64,000 nucleotides of DNA, taken from positions 520,531 to 584,530 of the forward strand of contig NW_005434634.1 in the NCBI RefSeq assembly GCF_000315625.1, in the 5' to 3' direction. A model generated the notes under the pieces. That model saw only the letters and a list, made by a program, of their open reading frames with translations. It searched no databases and was not told the origin of the DNA. Source of the DNA: Guillardia theta CCMP2712. Its lineage: Eukaryota > Protista > Cryptophyta. This document shows, one piece after another, positions 1-12,600 of the stretch. How positions within the stretch are numbered: the first letter of the stretch is position 1; every line of letters begins with the position of its first letter. The position numbers were made by a program, and so were the translations under genes.

Positions 1-3000
1 ATCAGAAATAAAAGACAAACTTCATATTTTACCAGTGGCAGTGTGAGATTACAGGCGCCATTGCAGCCGTTGACACCCATACTAATCATTGATGGGCCCT
101 CGTTTATTAGCTCATGTGATATTCTTGTACTCGACGCGAGGATGTCTCAGGGGGGGGGGGGGAGAAATCTGAATTTTCAATGGGGAATCATTCCAGGTGG
201 AGATATTGAACAATTGTTAATGGCATCTATACAGGAGCAGAACATAAACGTCCTATGCCCTGATTGGGTCGATCCGTTGTCTAAGAGCATCTGTCAAGCA
301 CCTATCCTACAACTTGATCCGAAAATAATGGCTGACGGTGGTGAATATACCTTTTTGCTTACTGCCACAAATTTTTTCGATCAAATATCAACAGTACAGC
401 ACAGAGTCACCAAGGTGCCCAATGATGGAATGCCAATACTTTCGATCCAAGGTGAATCCACCCTCAGTGTAAACCCAGACGAAGACAATACAATCCGTTT
501 ATCTGTACAGTCATCAAGCTGCGGCAGCAATAATCTATCCTTTGCATGGACTCTTGTTTCTGCTTCAGGTATAGTTCTGCTCAAGAATATAGATCTGAAT
601 CAAAGGAGACTTTTCATCCCCAAGAATTCTCTTCAAGGAGGATCACAGTACACATTTATGGCGGAACTGAGCAGTCACCAATTCAATGAAACTATGACTA
701 CAAATACAACAATTCTGATAATCACGTCCGAGATATCTGCGATTGCTGCCATTTCTGGTGGAAGTCGTACATCATCTGTTGCAGATTTGAGCACTTTTTC
801 TCTACAACTATTTGGAAACATAGCCTACGAATCAGTTTCAAGAATTGAATGGTATTGCGAGCCATCACCGTGCTTCTTAGATGTCTACAACAGTATTTCT
901 GTAGATGGACGAACATTTGCAATAGCACCCTTTTCGATTCTACCAGGCTTGTACAGACTGATTGCAGCCGTGACAATGCAGCAGGGAAGTATCTCGGTGC
1001 GTTTCTCCGCTGCTGCTAATGTCTTTGTGATCCCTTCAAGTCTGTCTGCCGTTTCCATATTCTCATCGGCCATGAAATTCAACTCCAAGCAAACCGTGAA
1101 TCTGATTGGCTCCCCTCAGAGCTACATTGACAAGACATTAAATTACGAATGGTTTCAGTCTCGTGGAGGACAGAATTTGCTTAGTGACAAAATCACAAGT
1201 ATTTCAAGCAGATTTTCGGATACACTTGGTTTTGCCAAAAATGCCTTGATGGAGGGTATGCAATATCGATACCGGCTCGAAGTTTGGAATCAAAATGGAT
1301 TTGGATTTGCTGAGATCGACATTGCTGTAAGCAAGGCGCCCTCAGGAGGAACTTTTGAAGTGAATCCATCGAAAGGGTTTGCTGTTGATACTAATTTTGA
1401 ATTAAGTGTGTCGCGTTGGACAGACTCTCCAGAGAATCTGCCGTTGTCATATCTTTTCAGCTATGTGTTAGATGTTGAAGATAGCACAAGTACAGCCGTC
1501 CCTTTCATCTACACCGACAAACCTTTTCAAAATGTGAGGATTCCGAATACAAACAAAGCAGTGCGCAATTCTTCCTTGATAGTACAGATTTTTAATATGG
1601 CTCATAGCGGAACAACTATCAACAGAACAGTCGAACTGAAAACGCCTCTAGATCCTTTTAGTTCAGCTGCAACCCTCCGCTCCCTGATTGAAATTTCTTC
1701 ATTGGCTCAAGATTTTGATAGCTTGATCATTCTGTCTTCGTGCTTAAGCAGTTTGCTAGAGACTTCATTAAGTCCTACGAGAAGAGACCAATCTACATTT
1801 TTCTGTCCAAACGATGGGACAAGTTGTGATAATGACGAGATCAGGAGCTTTCTCTTCCAGAAGGTGAAATCTTCATTGCAATACATCAAACCTGTTGCAG
1901 ACGAAATATCTATGCTTGCCAATTCGATTCAGAAAACGACCACTGCTCGGATGAATCGTACAAGTCAGATGCTGAGTTTATTGCTAACACAACAAGTCAT
2001 TCAAGTTGGAGTCGAGCAAACTTCTCTTGGTCAGTTTGGTACGGATGCAGTGATTGAGACCTTCAGTCAGCTCCTACTAGCAAACAACTACACCGTTGAT
2101 TTTGCTTCGATGAATCAAAGCGAGCGAACAGCACAAGCCATTTCAGGCTCATTGGATCTTATTCTGAATTATACCTCATCTCAAATGTTTGTCGGGCAAA
2201 TCCCTACGCGATCAATCGGAAGTCATCTGCAGTTTTTCGTCGCAAAAACCAGAGGTATAAATGCAACGTGGTCATTAAACGTTTTGTCAAATCAAAATCT
2301 CGCTTCAGGCGCGTTGAATACTTTGATTACGATCCCGAGTGACATAGTGGACAATGCGACTGCAGATTTGCTAGCAAGCGTGGACACTAGATTCGTGCAA
2401 TGGGGCAGTAATCCACATCCAACACTGGAATTATCCCTCGGAAGCAACGTCCTTGGAGTAAAACTGGCACTCACTTTTGCGGATCAAAGCTCCGTTGAGC
2501 AAAAAAGCATAAAAGAACCGATTCAGATCGTTTTCGCAAAGACAATAGGCGAGCGGACTTTTGATATCTTCGATCGTTGTAGATATTGGGACGCTCAAGG
2601 TCAAGTGTACTCAAGAACTGGAACCATTGCAAGCAATACAACGCAAGGCTCTGTAGCTTGTCAAGTATACCATATGACGGATTTTTCTTCAGTATTGCTC
2701 AGAGACATTGCAAGTCTCGATAAGATCTTGAACATCGAAAATCCGAATCCTTTCGTGAGGTGGACTCCTGATCGGACAGTTGCTGTCGTTACTTTGCTGG
2801 TGTTGTACGTTATCTATGCAATTTCATGCTATATTGGGCGAAGAATAGACAAAGCATCCTTGAGAATCCTTTCCTCGAAATTGCAGGAGAAGACCGCAGA
2901 TCCAAGGTATTCCATGCACCGTACCATGGAAGAGTTTAATCGCGCAAGAGATTATGTGATGATCAAGTCCATCTTAAAGCAAAGAATGGCAACAAGATAC

Positions 3001-4581
3001 AGATCATGGAAAATTCAAACTCTGCAACTTTTGAAGACTGAGCACGTGTTAGGGGGAATTTTCTTTCGACCTGTTTACAGCTCTTTCACGAGACCCCGAC
3101 GAATCACTTCGCTATTTGTTATGTTCTTTGGAAACCTCGCATTAAACATCCTATTTCTTGGTCAGGGTGCCTTTGATACAACATCGCGTGTGAGTGCAGG
3201 AATCGTCTCTGCCCTAATCGTCCTACCCATTGCAATTGTTTTTGTGTCAGCATTTAAATCAATCGATAGCGACGACACATGGCAGATGCATCGAAGGCGT
3301 CGAGTGCGTCGAGTGCAGGAATCAGTTGTGCTAAAAGAAGTAGGTAGAATGCTTGATGGCGTTGAAGACACATCCACAGCGGCACCGGATGTCAAAGGAT
3401 TGGAGGACCCTTCATCTGTGGCTCCTCCATTGCCCACGAGTGTACGTCCGGAGTTCATACGAAAGGCTTCAAGATCCAGTGGCTCACCGTCAACCCAGCC
3501 AGGCGCCCCTGAAGATGTACAGGTGAAACAGCAGCAAAAGGGAAAAGCTACCACGAGCGAGCGCTTCTTTCGCCGTAACTTGCAAGCGATCACTCCTGAA
3601 CTCATAGCGGGGACATCTGCAGAACTAAGCCACCTTCCCGAGTCCGACCAGGGAAAAATTCAGCATCGACCACAAAATGCTGGAAATGATTCGGCCCCTA
3701 ACCCTCCTCCTCCTCCAAAGGGGCAAAACCCACGGCCAGCCTTCGGGCGGGCCCAACGACCATCAAGCAATCAACCAATCATTATGAGCGTCAGGCCGTC
3801 TCCCCGTCAAACATTCAGACCTGTCAAGATGTCAAATGCTCTGGAATCCAACAAGAGCAGGAATGCTCTAGCACTACCAGGGCTGCAGTCTGAGAATCGG
3901 CAGTCAGCGAGTAATCAAAAATTCCCTTCCATTCCCGCCCCTCCTCCTCGAACACTTGCAGGCTCGCGGAATAGGCCATCGTTGACATCCAACAGGAGCA
4001 TCTCGACAAGAAACCTTCCTCGGCGCTTGTTCCCTCTCAATTCAGCAGTGAGGATGGGAGTACGAGGAGAATCCTCAAACCTTTCAAACCTAAAAAGAGG
4101 TGGCAACGTGAGGATGACAGGCTCCAGGAGGAATCAAATCCCTTCCTCGGAGACGCTTCCACTACCAACCGATGCCTATGGGCCTCTAAGCCCAATCGAA
4201 GAGGGTGATGAAGAGCGACGTGAAACAGCAACTTTACCAACTCGTGTCAAACCAGCACGACTGCTTGCACAACGGAGGCTAGATTGGTTGCGAAAACAAC
4301 TCCTGGACAAATCGCAGGCTCGTGTCAACGACCTTCAGCTTTTGCTACCACCGAAATTCTCTGTAGCAGTTTACATTCTGGCGATGTTATGGATGCTGCT
4401 GTGCTCGTACTTCATTGTCATCCATGGGATTCGATTCTCACCCCAAATGGAGGAGGCTTGGCTGGTCGCTTTTGTCGTCTCAGTAATCCAAGATATCCTC
4501 ATACAACAGGTATTGGTCATCGTTTTCAAATCTACTTTCCAGAAAGTTCTGCTTCCAGCAGCTCTGAAGAACGTCGTTTAA
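1..4581 (+). CDS. Polycystin-1-like protein (REJ domain, GPS motif, 5 TM segments); 5' end probably lies outside the window
   Basis: 1512-aa ORF. REJ-like repeats (LDARMS..GG..LNFQW; PSGGTFEVNPSKGFAVDTNF..WTD..LPLSYLFSY). GPS CRYWD...CQVYHM|TDFS at about 2578-2690. TM1, then a PKD1-type EHVLGGIFFRPVYSSFTRPRRITSLFVMFFGNLALNILF TM2 motif, TM3, a Pro/Arg-rich loop, TM4-TM5 and the stop. Confidence 0.85.
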   Translation: MRNKRQTSYFTSGSVRLQAPLQPLTPILIIDGPSFISSCDILVLDARMSQGGGGRNLNFQWGIIPGGDIEQLLMASIQEQNINVLCPDWVDPLSKSICQAPILQLDPKIMADGGEYTFLLTATNFFDQISTVQHRVTKVPNDGMPILSIQGESTLSVNPDEDNTIRLSVQSSSCGSNNLSFAWTLVSASGIVLLKNIDLNQRRLFIPKNSLQGGSQYTFMAELSSHQFNETMTTNTTILIITSEISAIAAISGGSRTSSVADLSTFSLQLFGNIAYESVSRIEWYCEPSPCFLDVYNSISVDGRTFAIAPFSILPGLYRLIAAVTMQQGSISVRFSAAANVFVIPSSLSAVSIFSSAMKFNSKQTVNLIGSPQSYIDKTLNYEWFQSRGGQNLLSDKITSISSRFSDTLGFAKNALMEGMQYRYRLEVWNQNGFGFAEIDIAVSKAPSGGTFEVNPSKGFAVDTNFELSVSRWTDSPENLPLSYLFSYVLDVEDSTSTAVPFIYTDKPFQNVRIPNTNKAVRNSSLIVQIFNMAHSGTTINRTVELKTPLDPFSSAATLRSLIEISSLAQDFDSLIILSSCLSSLLETSLSPTRRDQSTFFCPNDGTSCDNDEIRSFLFQKVKSSLQYIKPVADEISMLANSIQKTTTARMNRTSQMLSLLLTQQVIQVGVEQTSLGQFGTDAVIETFSQLLLANNYTVDFASMNQSERTAQAISGSLDLILNYTSSQMFVGQIPTRSIGSHLQFFVAKTRGINATWSLNVLSNQNLASGALNTLITIPSDIVDNATADLLASVDTRFVQWGSNPHPTLELSLGSNVLGVKLALTFADQSSVEQKSIKEPIQIVFAKTIGERTFDIFDRCRYWDAQGQVYSRTGTIASNTTQGSVACQVYHMTDFSSVLLRDIASLDKILNIENPNPFVRWTPDRTVAVVTLLVLYVIYAISCYIGRRIDKASLRILSSKLQEKTADPRYSMHRTMEEFNRARDYVMIKSILKQRMATRYRSWKIQTLQLLKTEHVLGGIFFRPVYSSFTRPRRITSLFVMFFGNLALNILFLGQGAFDTTSRVSAGIVSALIVLPIAIVFVSAFKSIDSDDTWQMHRRRRVRRVQESVVLKEVGRMLDGVEDTSTAAPDVKGLEDPSSVAPPLPTSVRPEFIRKASRSSGSPSTQPGAPEDVQVKQQQKGKATTSERFFRRNLQAITPELIAGTSAELSHLPESDQGKIQHRPQNAGNDSAPNPPPPPKGQNPRPAFGRAQRPSSNQPIIMSVRPSPRQTFRPVKMSNALESNKSRNALALPGLQSENRQSASNQKFPSIPAPPPRTLAGSRNRPSLTSNRSISTRNLPRRLFPLNSAVRMGVRGESSNLSNLKRGGNVRMTGSRRNQIPSSETLPLPTDAYGPLSPIEEGDEERRETATLPTRVKPARLLAQRRLDWLRKQLLDKSQARVNDLQLLLPPKFSVAVYILAMLWMLLCSYFIVIHGIRFSPQMEEAWLVAFVVSVIQDILIQQVLVIVFKSTFQKVLLPAALKNVV

Positions 4582-4737
4582 GTGATCGAGTCAGATTGAG
4601 CTAGTCGCAACACGCAAGGTGATGTTTTCCTGTCAACTTGCAGTGAGGCCTCCCTAAACTTAGCCTAAGAGAGATCAGTAGCTTTATTTCAACTAAGTAA
4701 AATCAATAATTCTGTAATACTAAAAGATGATGGACTG

Positions 4738-5988
4738 CTAAACAGGTGCTACAAAGGTCCTGATGTTCCACATCATGTGGACAGCAATAGGGACGATCAG
4801 ATTCCCAGTTCGGAAGTAGAGGAGAGACCACAGGTAACCCATCAGATAAAGATGTGCAAAGGCGCGCGGATTCATATGATTCAAGGCAAACACCAAGCTT
4901 GCCAAGTCTGTAGCAGTTGACAACGGCATCATGTGACTGAATGATTGCAACAAGTAGCCGCGGTACAAAATCTCTTCCCATATCGGACCTGTGAAGCAAG
5001 GCCCGATGCCTCCAACCACTCGAGCAATGAGGTCATCTCCTTCTGGTCGTTTCAACTTGTCCACAACGGTCTCTGTCGCGCTCTCCGGAAGCGATTGCAT
5101 CATATCATAGAAATTCCTCAAAATAGGAAGATTGAGAGACGAGAGAAATGTTCCCATGAGAAGCCCGAACGACGAAACAAAGCACGTGATCAAGTAGCCT
5201 ACAATTATGCTAACAAATGTGATGTGATTGGGTCTTTCGATTCGGAACCAATCCTTCGACGAGAAGAAGTTCTTCGTCCTGTTCTGGAGGATGAGACTTC
5301 CAGTGAAGACCCAGAACAAGTGCGAGAGGAGCACTTGCAGGGCACGTGAGAACCCGATGGTTATCGGCACATCCAAGATAGAAAGAGCACAGAGAAGGAT
5401 GTCAATGAACTGACTCAGATACGAAGAGCTCAGGTAGGCCATGCCCAAAAGGATGTAGGTCTCCGTGGTGTGGGATTTGCTTTGCGACGTGGCTGTGCTC
5501 GGCAACTTATCTTCATCAGTAACTGAGAGAGCAAGGTTTGCAACACCCTTATCAGATCTCCGAGATCCATAAAGAACTAAACCTAGCAGTGTGATGCCCC
5601 CAACGATCACTTCGCCAGACACACTTGGTCCCTTGGGTCCGAGGGGAGAAAATGAGCTTGGAGACACAAATTTCACATGTAGAGCAAACGCTATGATTGC
5701 ACCCAACGCTGCACCGAGAGTCTTTAGTGACACTGGAAAAACTGCTGAGGATCGCTTGCCATCACTGCTAGCTCGGATCTTAGTCCTGATGCTCTGCACG
5801 ATTCTATGACCAACCCACGGACGCATGTATGTCTGAGATCTTGGGTGCAGAGGCATGGAGGCAAGCCGTGATCGGCTGTTGACCCTTGTTATGAATTGAG
5901 GGGAGAAAGCATCGATAATCCCCCAGCAGGCTGCCACCAGCAGCATCCCCAGCTTCCTCCTCCATTGCCGACGACGGCCTCCGTGCAT
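4738..5988 (-). CDS. CPBP/Abi (CAAX protease-like) intramembrane glutamic endopeptidase with bipartite plastid-type presequence
   Basis: Motifs EEILYRG, FALNH and HMMWN; several TM helices. N-terminus MLLVAACWGIIDA|FSPQ followed by an Arg/Ser-rich transit-like region. Start uncertain. Confidence 0.85.
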   Translation of the reverse strand: MHGGRRRQWRRKLGMLLVAACWGIIDAFSPQFITRVNSRSRLASMPLHPRSQTYMRPWVGHRIVQSIRTKIRASSDGKRSSAVFPVSLKTLGAALGAIIAFALHVKFVSPSSFSPLGPKGPSVSGEVIVGGITLLGLVLYGSRRSDKGVANLALSVTDEDKLPSTATSQSKSHTTETYILLGMAYLSSSYLSQFIDILLCALSILDVPITIGFSRALQVLLSHLFWVFTGSLILQNRTKNFFSSKDWFRIERPNHITFVSIIVGYLITCFVSSFGLLMGTFLSSLNLPILRNFYDMMQSLPESATETVVDKLKRPEGDDLIARVVGGIGPCFTGPIWEEILYRGYLLQSFSHMMPLSTATDLASLVFALNHMNPRAFAHLYLMGYLWSLLYFRTGNLIVPIAVHMMWNIRTFVAPV

Positions 5989-6885
5989 TGTCCCGACAAA
6001 TTCGAGTGTGAACCGGTAAACTGGGTGACCACCGGCTGCCGGAGGCTGCGCCGCTCCAGGCCGGGCTGCCAAACAGAAGATTTCGGATCATCGCGCAAGT
6101 TATGGCACCCAGGCCTTTCTTCCCTTCACTGCAGGTACGGATGGTCTTCTTCATGCTGACGCTGAAGAAGATTTTCTTTCATACAGGGCTGTTTGATGTG
6201 CAGCTAGAGAGTGAACCGAGGCTCATAACCGACGGAGCACAAGTTTGTTAGAATGGTACTGTGCCAAAGTAATGCAGACATCCGATATCGACCTCAGCTG
6301 CAACAAGACAGTTTTTGCTCAAGACTGAGTTTGATGCACATGAAACATAGAAGGGCTCCTCTTCGACACAAGCTTTACATTGCCGCCTCGAAAACAGTGA
6401 CTCGCCACGTACCGTACTACTGAGGGTACGGTCACCGACGCCGGTCGTCTTCAAGAGAGTTCTGTTAACTCGGAGACACGGCTGGCATGCGATCCATCAC
6501 TTTACTGTTGCCCAAACAGGCTGTCATCAATGATGCCTGCCAGATTCCCGGTGAACGGACATTTGTGCCGCGGCCTCGGACCAAGTTCAGTGAGTATGTA
6601 GTAGTTTATTGACTGAAAAAGAAAGGCAAACCCGCCTCAATAAAATACTGCCAGCATGCACGTAGTCACTGAGTAGTAGCACTGAGTAGGTCTCGTAGAA
6701 GGAGAATGATTCTCTTTTGATTGACTGAAGGCTTCGGACTTTTGACTTTTTTTTCCCCTTCTGACGGCCATCAAGACCAAGAGCCGGTGGGCAAGGAGTG
6801 AGAGGGGAGCGGAGGAAGGTAAGAGAGGAGAGGAGGGAGTCAGTGATGCCCATTACTCAATTTTCAGCTTAGCGGGCAGGAAGTC

Positions 6886-9516
6886 ATGGCATCGAAGATA
6901 GAAAGGATAGAGGATAATGTCTCAGAGGTAATGATACTTCGACTGTGTGTTATGCATGATGTTGAGTCAACAGTCCGGAGATCCATCTGCATTTCTGAAC
7001 AAACGCTGCAATGTACGGAAGGTTTACAATGTTGTCAAAGCAAAGCTTCATGCTCGAAAACTAGGAGCATCGGTATGTGGAGGCATAGCATCGAAACTGA
7101 TGCTTCCTGACTTCGTTCAGTTTATGCGGTATGGATGCTTTTTAGCAATCTACATAGCAGTGGTTCTGGATCAGAAAAATGCGACAGTCAAGCAATCCCT
7201 GGATAATGCGTTCGACACATACTTTGTGAAAGGTTTTCAGGAATTCTGTGTATTGATTTCAAGTTGACACGAATGATCAAGCAACTTTCCGAGATCCATC
7301 TTCTCTCGAATTTAAAGGATGGTATGACATCGTCACCATTGACGATTTCTGGAATTGGTTAGAACACATTTGTAATGATTTCATGGATGACCTGGTGAAT
7401 GTAGGCACCAATATCTTCTTATTCCTCGCTTGATCATCGAAGACAATTACGATTATGGCTCTCCGCCACTTCTTCCAGAACAGGCTAGTAGAATGGATGC
7501 TGGGGAGAAATTTTTTGTATGACAGAATATCAAAAACACAGAAGTACAAAATCTTAATGCATAACAAAATTACTGGTGGATTCACGATGATGCAAAGAAG
7601 AGCCGACACTCGGTAAAACTTTGAATTTCAGATAAGTGAATAACTCATGTCTCGACTAGGACGTGTCCGATCTTACGCAAGTATCTTGAATTCATGCCAC
7701 ACTGCACCTATGAGTTATATGCCAGCGGCACTGTGGGCAAAGTCAATCGGTAAATACCTGGATTGCATAGCGCATGATTGAAAAGTGTGTGTGTAGGTCA
7801 ACATTCATTGGCGCGAGGGGCGAAGTATTTCGATACGACGAAAGGCCTGCTGTTTTCCCTTATCAGGACTTTGGGTACTTTGAAACCTTTCCGAGGAATC
7901 AGAGTCTCGCTCTACAGAGGCTGCTCGAGTTGAAGGTAGTTGCTGTTCTGTGACAATTGCTTCTGACCGATTCCTCCATTCAGTCACAGAGATGGATTGA
8001 CGCTCAGACAAAATATTATCGATTGGATTTCGTATCTTTGAATACCAACGTGGGGCTATTCACGTATGTGAAGCTAGTTGCAAGATTCAGCAACACAGGA
8101 TCGATTCTTCTTAGTCATGATATTTCAAATCTTCCGGCGTCAACATACCGAACCTCTCGTCAAAAACTGAGGTATTGCTCGATGGTATGCCACCGACATG
8201 ACTTATGGTTGCAGGTTTGCCGGTGAAATCATCCTGATTCTTTTATGGTCATTGTACGTCCTACACGAAATAAAGGTGATTAGGGAGAGGTCAAGAGAAA
8301 AGGACAGTCTGGCGAATGCCTTGTATCAAAGTGCAAAGCGGCTATCAACTCTGCAGCTCTTGATCTTTGCCTGTATTATAGCAATGTGGGCCACAATTGT
8401 GCGAGAGCTCGAATCTAAGTACTCCAACCTGATCATCACAAGCCACGCCATTACCACCAAGAACCCGCCGAATCAACCTCCAGACTTTTTTTATGTCATT
8501 GCTCTGGTGGATGCCTATTTCATCTTGAACGGCATCAATATGCTCTTGTCTTTCTTTCGATGTATCGAGTACTTGGAATTCAATTATTCTCTTTCTCGAT
8601 TGACGGAAACATTCAAGTTCATGAGGAAAACTTTGCCGCAATTCCTTTTGATCTTCTGCATAGTTGTCCTTTCTTTTATGCTAATGAGTCATCTCATGTT
8701 TGGATCGAAGTTGGCGATGTTCTCATCTTTTGGATCGGCACTGTCAGGAATCTTCTCAGTGTTGATTGGTGACATCAATTACTTTCAGCTCATGGACGCG
8801 GACTCGGTGGCAGCGCCCATCTTCTTCTATCCGCTTCTGTTTGTGATGATCTTCGTGGTTTTGAATCTCGTGATTGCAATTATCATCGATGCTCATGTGG
8901 CGATGACGGCTGAGAAGGATGTTGCTCTCCGCTCATGGATGAAAGATGTTGTCGACTTGCCCCTTACCACGCAGCTCTGGGATGGTGTCCTTCATTACCT
9001 GGAGCCGATTCGCTTCCTGTTGCCACATGCTCTGTCCGCTAGGTACGATCGAGTGAGCAAGGAGAACATCATCGACGCCTTCAACGTCTTGGAAGGGATT
9101 GAACTTCCCAGTCATGACAAATCACAAGTCAACCTCGAACGTATCTCTCTCATGGACTTGCGGCTGCTTCTTCGGGATCGCAACATCACCGAGCAGAGGC
9201 TGGCTTCGATCTTCGAGCATTATGGAGCATGGGCTGAGGAGGAGGAGCCGGTGGATACTGAGGTGACTTGTTCAAGATTTCTTCCGACACTGATAGAACT
9301 TTTCAGAAACTTGCAGATACTGACAAATTGGCGTATGCTGAGTTGCTACAAGAGGCCACGAGTGGTGCGTGTTGTTCGCTTGCGATTCAGTTCATGACGT
9401 TTCCAGCAGAGATCGAGAAGCTGTTGTCAGAGATCCAAGCCTCCATGCAGTTTTCTCAAGACCTGCAGAAGGAGGCTGAAGAGCAGCTGGACTTGCTTAT
9501 TGACGCTCACATCTGA
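6886..9516 (+). CDS. PKD2: Polycystin-2-like (TRPP) cation channel, multi-exon
   Basis: Spliced exons give S1, a TOP domain (DDFWNWL; NKITGGFTMMQRR; RWIDAQTKYYRLDFVSLNTNVGLF), S2-S6, pore SVLIGDINY, PIFFYPLLFVMIFVVLNLVIAIIIDAH and a C-terminal coiled coil. Confidence 0.88.
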
Positions 9517-9633
9517 GAGGTGCTAGGGATGTACTATGAGGAGGAGGAGCGAGGGCGGACAGAGAAGGGAGGGGCTTGCCAAGGGGGAGGCAGGAAGGCA
9601 TAGACATTGTAGATTTAATTGCAGAAGGAAATT

Positions 9634-12600
9634 TTATTTGAGGGACTGGCGGCTCTTCAAGACGCTCTTGACCTCGTCCCATTCCTGCAAGAAGTTGAGA
9701 GGACCAAAGGAATGAGGACCCTTGCCTTGGAGGGAGCTATCCTCTCGTACATCCCCAGCTCCTCCGGCATCTCCCCGAACTCCCTTGGCCTCTGTCCGTT
9801 GAGAATCTAGAGGAAGTCAGCGCCAGCTCCCCTCCCCTCCTCTCCCTCGCACAGCTGCGATGTCGCCCGATAGTTCCTTGTCGACATGCCACCTTCCCCT
9901 TGAGCGTTCGGTCATTCTCCTCTTCAGCATCCTGCATGTTCTCACAACCCCCGGAGCTTCCCTAACTCTCTCACGTGGCCATGACTTCTCGATCAAAGGC
10001 AGGAGCAGCTGCAACCTTGAGAGTATCGCGGACGAGAGCATCTTTGACCTACGAAAGCGTTGGTGACGAACAGCAGAGGAGAGGGAGAGGGGGGGGAAGC
10101 ACCTTGAAATCAAGATCGTTGTCTCGCGACAAGCTTGGCGACGCGTTCACCTCAATCAGCCAAGGACGTAGATCTGGGAAGCATGAACAAGCGGAGAAGA
10201 AGGACAGAAGGAAGGAAGAGGAGAAGGCCAGGAGGATGAGAAGGAGGAGCACCCGAGTCTATCAGAATGTCGAACCCGAAGAGCTCGAAGGCGTTGGGGT
10301 GCTGGGGGATGCGGTCTTGTACGCAGAAGAGCGTCTTGAGGACCACCAGCGCTACCCGCCCCCACAGGCTCTTCCAGTCGATCCCAAGTGCTCTCAGCCG
10401 CCGCTGAAGCTGCTCAAGAGAAATCTAAAGAGAATTTAGCGTCCTCCTCACTCACTCGTGGAGCAAACCTTGGAGCCCCCGGATGCATACCCGTCCGACC
10501 TTAAGTTTCGCTGCTGGAGCTCGTTGACATTGTGGCGGTTGATGGAGCTGAGGAAGGAGAGAAGAGATGAGAAGAAGGTCGGAGAGACGACCAGAGGACG
10601 AGGAGGCGCCAGCAGATGAGGAGGAGGTTGGGAGGAGCAAGCATCTCCTGTCACCTATTTGTCAAGTGAATGAAGCGGTTTGCGATGTCTCCGGCATCGA
10701 GGCTGCAAGGAGTCATTAGGAACGGTCGTGGTCTGAAGGAGCAGCTGCGAACCTGTACCGTTCGGAGCTGAAGCGAGCGAAGCCCTCCTGGTACAAAAAC
10801 GCCTCGAGGGGGTTCATGCTGGTGACGAGGACGTAGAGGCGAAGGTCGAACTTGTAGCCCTCGAGGAGGAGAGGACGCTCGATGTAGGCCTGCACGATGA
10901 CGCACTCGGTGTAGGAGACGGCAGCGATGTCGTTGAACACGAAGATGCCACGACCTCGCGAGGACCCCGCAGGCTTCATGATCCACAAATTCTTCGAGGT
11001 CGGGAGGTCTGCTTTCCTCGCAAACTCCGTACAGAACTGAACGTACTCACCAGGAAGCGTGAAGGTGAGCTGTGAGTGAAATATGTAAGAAGTGAAAAGC
11101 GAGGAGCACACAGCGGAGAATGAGCAGGGAGAGCAAAACAAGCAGCGGAAGAGCAAAGCAAGCAGCGGAAGAGCAAAGCAAGCAGCGGAAGAGCAGCAGA
11201 CGTACAGGAGTTATGTCGAAGTACTCTCCGACTTTCCCCGGAATGTTTCGATACCTTGCAACGTTGCGTTTGAGATTATCCTGTGAAGTGTGAGGGGAAA
11301 AGTATGCTCGTACTCAAACCTTTCGAGTCAGATGCTTCGCTTCTGGGAAATGATTCACTCGCTGCCAGATGTTGAGGTCTGACCACTGAATCTGCAGCAC
11401 ACGTTTGAATCCTACACGATCACATGCCTTCCTCACTTTCGGCTTGCTCCACGTCCACAGCAGGTTCCAGCAGGAAGAGTTCTTCTGCTCGAGCAGAGTT
11501 AGACAAGCTGAGAAGTGGGACGGAAGGGATGGTACGTGCGAAGCAGGCATCTCCGTCCAGTCAGCTGAATCATCTCGAAGGCTCAAGAATGCTTCAGACA
11601 CGATGGAAGCGACCTGACGGGACACTCAGGAGGCGAAACGATACGGGGGCAGCTACTTCTGGTCGGTTCTGTACGACTCTGAAGAGAAGCTGGGCGGAGC
11701 TCCTCTCCTTCTGGTACGCCGACGCTCTGCCTCCTGGTCACCTCCTCGAGAAAACGTTTCAGCAGCACCTGTCCGAGCAAGCTTGAAGCGCGTCGTCCAG
11801 CTCCTTGTCTCCCATGTTGATCTTCACCTCATTCTTGCCGTGCAAGTCAATTTCCTCGACCTCGCCTCTCCTCCTACTCGTACCTTCCGCCATCGCCCGA
11901 AGGTTGCCTTGAGCGATTCCCACTCCTTGATGAACTTCTCCGCTACCTCCGCAAACCTCTTCCTCTTCATGTCAGCCTCTCTACTTGTGAATGCTCAGCA
12001 CCTGAGGATTTTCTTTTTCTCCAAGATGATGAAACGTGAAAATCTGCTCCACGGACTTGAACTGTGATGAGTAGAGAGTAGCAGGAACTTCTGGGAGCTT
12101 CTGGCAGACAGTTTCCTTGCTCAAGGTCATCTCCTCTTCCCTGCTCGGGTCTTGGGAAGTAACAGGAGGCTCCAAGTCAAGAGCTTGACTTTGGGGTCCA
12201 ACACTTGACGACTGTGTTTCTGTCGTACCTGATTGCTGCACAATCTCATTCGATGCTGCAGCCCCCAGCGGCTCAGCCTCATCATCATCACTTTCAAGTC
12301 CATCGGAGAAGGCAATGAGTTCGAGCTCATGCAATTTTCGCCTCCTGTCCCACAAGGAGTTAGGGAATTCATCTCGTCTCTCCAGCCTCTCACGTCTCCT
12401 CGTTGAGATTCTTCTGCCAGCCATCCGACGACGTCGCAAGCTCCTCTGCCTGGTCTCTGAGAGAAGGATCGTAGAAGTCTTTCTCATCCTCGTCCAGTCT
12501 GGCATGTGCCGGTTGGATCCATGGCTCTGGTGATGTCCGTTGTTCCCCTAAGAGCAAGAGGTCAAAAATCGCTGCGACAAGACAAACGAGCACAACCGAC

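Follow-up and report, generated by a model that had tools for sequence, protein, structure and literature searches.

The question raised by this locus is whether two neighbouring genes of the cryptophyte Guillardia theta CCMP2712 represent the two halves of animal polycystin-1 (PC1) in an unfused state. The role of the first five membrane helices in PC1, a kidney-disease protein, is poorly understood. Both genes lie in a 64,000-nucleotide stretch of contig NW_005434634.1 (positions 520,531 to 584,530 of the forward strand), which is the window referred to below and whose own numbering is used throughout. A first-pass annotation, made from the sequence alone, had described here a gene encoding a REJ domain, a GPS motif and five transmembrane (TM) segments matching TM1-5 of PKD1, which stops right after TM5 (gene 1). 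It was said to be followed by a stand-alone six-TM channel gene on the same strand with its own ATG (gene 2), with only an antisense CPBP gene between them, and the pair was proposed to be a "split" polycystin-1 and a snapshot of how PKD1 arose. The description of the parts withstood the analysis presented here, which nevertheless leads to a plainer reading of the whole, to which a probability of about 0.8 is assigned: in this cryptophyte of the Guillardia/Hanusia clade, the two genes would be independent of each other, one being the 3' end of a gene for a giant, channel-less receptor and the other an ordinary TRPP/PKD2-type channel gene. The features of both genes and of their surroundings are collected in Table 1.

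The likeness to PC1 was evaluated on the membrane part of gene 1. A single-sequence phmmer search with this region gave no match in the PDB, and PC1 was reached only by means of family profiles. The profile built from the block spanning from the GPS to TM3 (A1) matched human PC1 (6a70_B) with E = 7e-12 over the TM2-TM3 hairpin and the motif preceding it (EHxLGGIFFRPxxSxFTRPRR), and the profile of the TM4-TM5 block (A3) gave PC1 chains as its sole match (E = 1.2e-3, chain positions 531-602). This second match lies some 200 residues closer to the C-terminus than that of TM2-TM3, so that the two are collinear. An exhaustive phmmer search over 1.84 billion representatives yielded 142 homologues of gene 1, including the animal proteins PKDREJ and PKD1L2, which carry both matched blocks in the right order, upstream of their PKD_channel domain. 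On the strength of these sequence comparisons, the membrane part of gene 1 can be regarded as a real, collinear homologue of PC1 TM1-5, as had been claimed.

The extracellular portion that precedes these helices was found to consist of the REJ domain and a GAIN-like region that ends in a GPS-like motif, C873-x3-H877-M878-T879-D-F, whose C, H and F are invariant when aligned with 27 homologues. Several homologues having the C..C..H-x-T-x-F pattern of gene 1 do pass the Pfam threshold for GPS. In an AlphaFold2 (AF2) model of residues 540-1512, the GAIN-like part is folded, with low confidence, into a helical and a beta subdomain. The TM helices reach predicted local distance difference test (pLDDT) values of 75-92, and the TM3-TM4 loop, whose length varies between homologues, remains at 32-48 (model blocks 58-86, about residues 1110-1399). 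The best Foldseek matches of this predicted structure were GAIN domains of adhesion G protein-coupled receptors (E = 8e-4 to 0.05), and PC1 chains were also matched locally (2.2-2.8 Å root-mean-square deviation over ~100 residues); being fold matches of a low-confidence model, they serve as weak support only. Pfam detected no PLAT domain in gene 1, the TM1-TM2 loop included. This loop presents a strongly conserved helix of ~35 residues, RARDYVMIKxILKxRxxxRYxSW (alignment A2), which has no Pfam match and may be a cytosolic interaction element specific to the channel-less family.

A crucial point is whether gene 1 truly ends after TM5. Its frame stops 17 codons past this helix, and the tail beyond TM5 is conserved as protein among the homologues. 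Furthermore, a transcript-derived protein of Hanusia phi, P0218, is 79% identical to gene 1 over all of its 1512 residues and ends at the identical residue. The stop after TM5 is, thus, the true end of the gene, supported at the mRNA level by the orthologue from Hanusia phi. The beginning of the gene was a different matter: the first-pass annotation had placed the domains correctly, but the open reading frame (ORF) that it took as the gene is only the final coding exon of a far longer one, as deduced from two sources. P0218 (2024 residues) contains, upstream of the region equivalent to gene 1, 513 extra residues with filamin/Ig-type Pfam matches. The metagenome scaffold GROS21-1 ... scaffold_87 (L011, 1-15064) carries a relative of gene 1, and upstream of it, in the same orientation, come two ORFs (19,861 and 639 residues) that give filamin/Ig-like matches. 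Proteins of more than 20,000 residues with a REJ-5TM ending seem to recur in other cryptophyte-like organisms.

Further information about the nature of gene 1 came from its family. Among the 89 homologues in which TM4-TM5 could be matched, 74 end within 100 residues (median ~10) of the C-terminus of gene 1, and a channel is present in none of these 74. They include transcript-derived (Trinity) sequences of Rigifila ramosa and Gefionella okellyi and a gene model of Cyanophora paradoxa, and the cryptophyte members of the family come from Cryptomonas curvata, Rhodomonas salina, Baffinella frigidus and Hanusia phi, so that the channel-less 5TM homologues span several eukaryotic supergroups. Homologues in which a channel follows TM5 are few; every one of them that was scanned for it bears a PLAT domain, and those with a name are animal proteins. 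PLAT was absent from the ten 5TM-only relatives scanned, and was found in the fused homologue P0101 and in the fragments P0141 and P0079. From this distribution of PLAT and channel, two classes of homologues were derived, one animal, PLAT-bearing and channel-fused, and the other mostly protist, PLAT-less and channel-less. Gene 1, which ends less than ~100 residues past TM5 and has the conserved TM2-TM3 and TM4-TM5 blocks (alignments A1-A3), fits the second one. To judge from the 74 homologues, ending just past TM5 is the rule for the family, and gene 1 is a typical representative of a channel-less group that is widespread and mostly found in protists. It was also observed that in Baffinella frigidus (MU646499.1; L020, 24228-26971) an annotated 284-residue gene located downstream of a partial REJ/GPS model holds the TM4-TM5 exons of that same gene, meaning that the public annotation divides one receptor gene in two.

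Gene 2, in turn, can be read as one open frame of 754 residues, starting at an ATG 2.3 kb past the stop of gene 1 and on the same strand, in agreement with the initial description. Its last intron is confirmed by a Hanusia phi transcript-derived protein, P0002; introns 1-7 and the mini-exon that opens the gene were deduced from the reading frame, the splice sites and homology. Since the polycystin domain is split over six small exons, only its C-terminal part yields a Pfam score; the FWNW motif and the cysteines of this TOP domain can be read from the translation. The hydropathy profile displays six peaks, and the IGD of the selectivity filter aligns with the LGD of PKD2L1. The best matches in the PDB were PKD2L1 and PKD2 (1e-16 to 3e-14), and none of the best 60 corresponded to PC1 or PKD1L3 chains. 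Considering the full pore and these closest matches, gene 2 would encode a normal PKD2-type subunit and not a counterpart of the degenerate channel half of PC1. A word-index search with the channel exon gave matches only in a near-identical strain and in Hanusia. P0002 and P0218 are separate transcript records, which corroborates that the two genes are unfused. The Hanusia orthologues are 79-90% identical to their counterparts in the window.

Between both genes lies, on the opposite strand, the anticipated CPBP/Rce1-like protease gene. Four RNA sequencing runs were placed on positions 3700-9650, and only this gene and a minus-strand gene downstream of gene 2 were covered. As the CPBP gene is spanned without gaps by transcript contigs of three runs, it can be considered both expressed and intronless. 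It is convergent with gene 1 (its 3' end is ~100 nt from the stop of the latter) and divergent from gene 2 (its 5' end is ~900 nt from the ATG), and the arrangement of gene 1 and the CPBP gene is identical in the near-identical strain (L019).

All these observations bear on the proposal that the locus is a special, split form of PKD1. The two genes do correspond by homology to the two halves of animal polycystin-1, sharing a strand and following the order of the animal protein. However, the 74 homologues mentioned above end alike without any channel, the fused forms have the PLAT domain that gene 1 lacks, gene 2 is a complete PKD2-type subunit and an unrelated expressed gene intervenes. Consequently, the notion of a gene caught splitting or fusing is not supported, and the locus is not in itself evidence of a PKD1 fusion event. 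Several points weigh against considering the genes as an independent receptor of this family and an independent channel. The GPS of gene 1 is by itself below the Pfam threshold (PF01825, E = 0.0038, 18.1 bits versus a cut-off of 22.5), and its cleavage is putative. As a whole, the AF2 model is of low quality (mean pLDDT 53). Many of the 5TM-only homologues are metagenomic ORF calls, possibly cut at introns, although the transcript-derived ones agree with them. Finally, the four RNA runs left both genes without a single read or contig, so the independence of the two genes in this organism rests on the stop codon, on the transcripts of the sister species and on the family comparison.

One alternative, a single PC1-type gene with 11 TM segments, requires a donor in or after TM5 (for example, at 4509/4510) joined to the acceptor of channel exon 2 (6973/6974) across a ~2.4-kb intron hosting the antisense CPBP gene. 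Both sites are in phase 0 and would join in frame, the ORF of the relative P0004 breaks at the equivalent position, and a fused protein would agree with the topology. Nevertheless, the donor-like CAG|GTATTG at 4510 was ruled out as an intron start because the residues beyond it are conserved as protein in many homologues; in addition, the Hanusia phi protein P0218 reads through it to the same stop. Against a fusion also stand the size of the eight introns of gene 2 (only 42-49 nt), the presence of its own ATG and a pre-S1 region in the channel, and the fact that the family, as a rule, ends past TM5. Altogether, this gene structure is extremely improbable.

Another possibility keeps the genes separate and joins their products: the REJ-5TM receptor would dock in trans on the tetrameric PKD2-type channel encoded next to it and control its gating or location, in the way that PC1 acts on PC2, and the genes would have stayed linked for co-regulation (for instance, in flagella or gametes). 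The short distance, the common strand and the order of the animal fusion fit this proposal, as does the fact that both products are homologous to components of the PC1/PC2 system. Moreover, both genes are missing from the three transcript assemblies that have the CPBP gene, and the Hanusia phi transcriptome contains the orthologues of both, two observations that are compatible with co-regulation. On the other hand, the intervening gene is unrelated and expressed, proteins of the 5TM family occur widely on their own, and gene 1 lacks a C-terminal coiled coil like that through which PC1 binds PC2. The neighbourhood does not seem to be conserved either. None of 20 loci around relatives of gene 1 gave a channel gene in tblastn searches, for which the channels of G. 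theta, Hanusia and animals served as queries; the same animal queries did detect gene 2, down to 4e-11. The usable downstream flanks, which are short and belong to relatives of uncertain orthology, were those of four other loci: 3.4 kb (L001), 2.6 kb (L005/L012 and L008) and 5.4 kb (Baffinella, L020). Among the contigs of eight relatives that were looked up, most end 0.2-3.5 kb past the gene (that of L014 stops 167 nt past the called gene end), and a metagenome scan with A2 yielded five loci, all with 0.3-2.6 kb downstream. At L005/L012, the downstream neighbour has a faint match to TruD. The absence of a channel from these flanks constitutes moderate evidence against a conserved linkage. A functional pair acting in trans is, hence, unlikely, and quite unlikely too is the broader proposal that the neighbourhood is non-random, that receptor and adjacent channel are co-regulated and assemble in trans as a polycystin-like sensor (perhaps of flagella or gametes), and that such pairs were the raw material for the PKD1 fusion, with PLAT added later.

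Table 1. Position, strand and supporting evidence of the features of the receptor gene, the channel gene and the genes next to them.
Feature	Position	Strand	Basis
Gene 1: last coding exon of the giant REJ-GAIN/GPS-5TM surface receptor gene	43..4581	+	ORF; 1512 codons, stop 4579-4581
REJ domain, residues 192-535	616..1647	+	Pfam PF02010, E=7.7e-22
GAIN-like region with GPS motif at its end (residues ~845-882)	1660..2688	+	PF01825 sub-threshold; homologue alignment; low-confidence AF2 model
Putative GPS cleavage site H877-M878/T879	2671-2679	+	Motif reading
TM1	2779..2835	+	Hydropathy; weak alignment to PC1 TM1
Cytosolic TM1-TM2 loop with conserved helix (RARDYVMIK..RYRSW)	2836..3102	+	Invariant columns in alignment A2; position of PLAT in animal PKD1 proteins
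TM2-TM3 hairpin (TM2 3103-3159, TM3 3190-3246)	3103..3246	+	Hydropathy; profile A1 versus PC1
Cytosolic TM3-TM4 loop, ~350 residues, Pro/Ser/Arg-rich, probably disordered	3265..4332	+	Composition; low pLDDT
TM4-TM5 hairpin (TM4 ~4357-4425, TM5 ~4456-4527)	4357..4527	+	Hydropathy peaks; profile A3 versus PC1
Conserved 17-residue C-terminal tail and stop codon	4528..4581	+	Aligned with homologues ending 10-60 residues past TM5
CPBP/Rce1-like intramembrane protease gene, intronless, expressed	4684..5993 (ORF 4738-6072)	-	PF02517 9.2e-18; probable ATG 5988 or 5946
Gene 2: PKD2/TRPP-type channel gene, 9 exons, 754 residues	6886..9516	+	One open frame, own ATG, eight GT-AG introns of 42-49 nt
Gene 2, exons 1-5	6886-6927, 6974-7232, 7282-7400, 7443-7612, 7660-7749	+	
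Gene 2, exons 6-9	7797-7935, 7984-8171, 8215-9262, 9307-9516	+	
TOP/polycystin domain between S1 and S2 (exons 2-7; S1 also in exon 2)	7233..8171	+	PF20519 Polycystin_dom 2e-7 to 7e-7 on exon 7
S2-S6 with pore and cytosolic tail	8215..9262	+	PF08016 PKD_channel 3.5e-19; Ion_trans 2.8e-9
Poly(A) site of the next gene, bounding the 3' end of gene 2	9599..9601	-	Poly-T loose ends in raw RNA reads

Some additional features of the surroundings were observed. The minus-strand gene defined by the poly(A) site, whose start lies further downstream, is convergent with the channel gene and comes to within ~85 nt of its stop. In the region between the CPBP gene and gene 2, three stretches of 30-50 nt (6114-6163, 6234-6282 and 6302-6340) match pieces of other transcript contigs that are far more abundant (depth 84 to 13,000) and whose flanks differ from the window, and raw reads near ~6280 reveal a copy that lacks 7 nt. 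These stretches, in which no tRNA, Rfam family or repeat within the region was detected, look like fragments of repeated or highly expressed sequence. The divergent promoter region contains, on the minus strand (6719-6809), a weak H/ACA snoRNA-like match to SNORA61 (29.8 bits versus a gathering score of 74, E = 0.004), which is probably due to chance.

Assuming that the two genes are independent, a possible mode of action can be outlined. The family of gene 1 shares a layout made of a huge adhesive ectodomain, REJ, GAIN/GPS, five TM segments and a short tail, with neither PLAT nor a channel half, and corresponds, as a free-standing protein, to the N-terminal membrane half of animal polycystin-1. 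Its members may act as adhesion-type receptors, the ectodomain of which would bind a ligand or sense force. The GPS (H-M/T) might permit autoproteolysis and leave a tethered stalk, and the 5-TM bundle, together with the long proline-rich cytosolic loop, would relay the signal. The product of gene 2, with its TOP domain, six TM segments and complete pore, should be able to form homotetrameric cation channels. A partnership of the receptor with some TRPP channel, be it the neighbour or another one, is conceivable.

The locus is ordinary in itself, and its study provided the picture of the family as a useful by-product. TM1-5 of PC1 exist as a free-standing receptor module, devoid of PLAT and channel, in cryptophytes, a glaucophyte, Rigifila and a malawimonad, and protists having this free module offer simple systems in which its function on its own can be asked. 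The distribution of the family supports, and fits, the general idea that animal PKD1 may have arisen when a REJ receptor with five TM segments was joined to a PKD2-like channel and PLAT was gained, and the family picture makes such a fusion testable. If the pair described here did work together, it would represent a natural "unfused" polycystin complex.

As far as known systems are concerned, the proteins of the animal polycystin-1 family (PKD1, PKD1L1-3, PKDREJ and sea urchin SpREJ3-6) share with gene 1 the REJ domain, TM1-5 and a HxxLSxxxRPxxSxFTRxxR motif before TM2, and their GAIN/GPS has its likeness in the GAIN-like region and GPS-like motif of gene 1. In contrast to them, gene 1 lacks a PLAT domain between TM1 and TM2, ends without the channel-like half (TM6-11) or a C-terminal coiled coil, and displays a disordered TM3-TM4 loop of ~350 residues and a far larger ectodomain. 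Channel-less REJ proteins had also been described before: the sea urchin proteins SpREJ1/2/7-10, with 0-6 TM segments (PMC1934368), and Ectocarpus Esi0130_0068, a male gamete-specific protein with REJ, GPS and 6-7 predicted TM segments (PMC4700764). All of them combine a REJ-GPS ectodomain with a short multi-pass anchor and lack a pore, although the channel-less sea urchin proteins, unlike gene 1, usually retain PLAT. Esi0130_0068, by analogy of the similar size of its membrane part, is probably of the same 5-TM type as gene 1. In neither of these reports is the membrane part equated with PC1 TM1-5 or the breadth of its spread noted. Gene 2, for its part, resembles PKD2, PKD2L1 and the Chlamydomonas and Paramecium PKD2 proteins in having S1, a TOP/polycystin domain, S2-S6 and a filter that aligns with LGD, and is distinguished among polycystin-2/TRPP channels by a short N-terminus (~60 residues) and by the lack of an EF-hand recognised by Pfam; its C-terminal tail is helix-rich. 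When compared with the 1:3 complex of PC1 and PC2 (6A70), gene 1 and gene 2 together hold homologues of all the membrane modules of PC1. However, one of the channel positions in that structure is filled by TM6-11 of PC1, a half that the 5-TM module of gene 1 does not have, and any complex between the two products would, therefore, need a docking mode different from that seen in 6A70.

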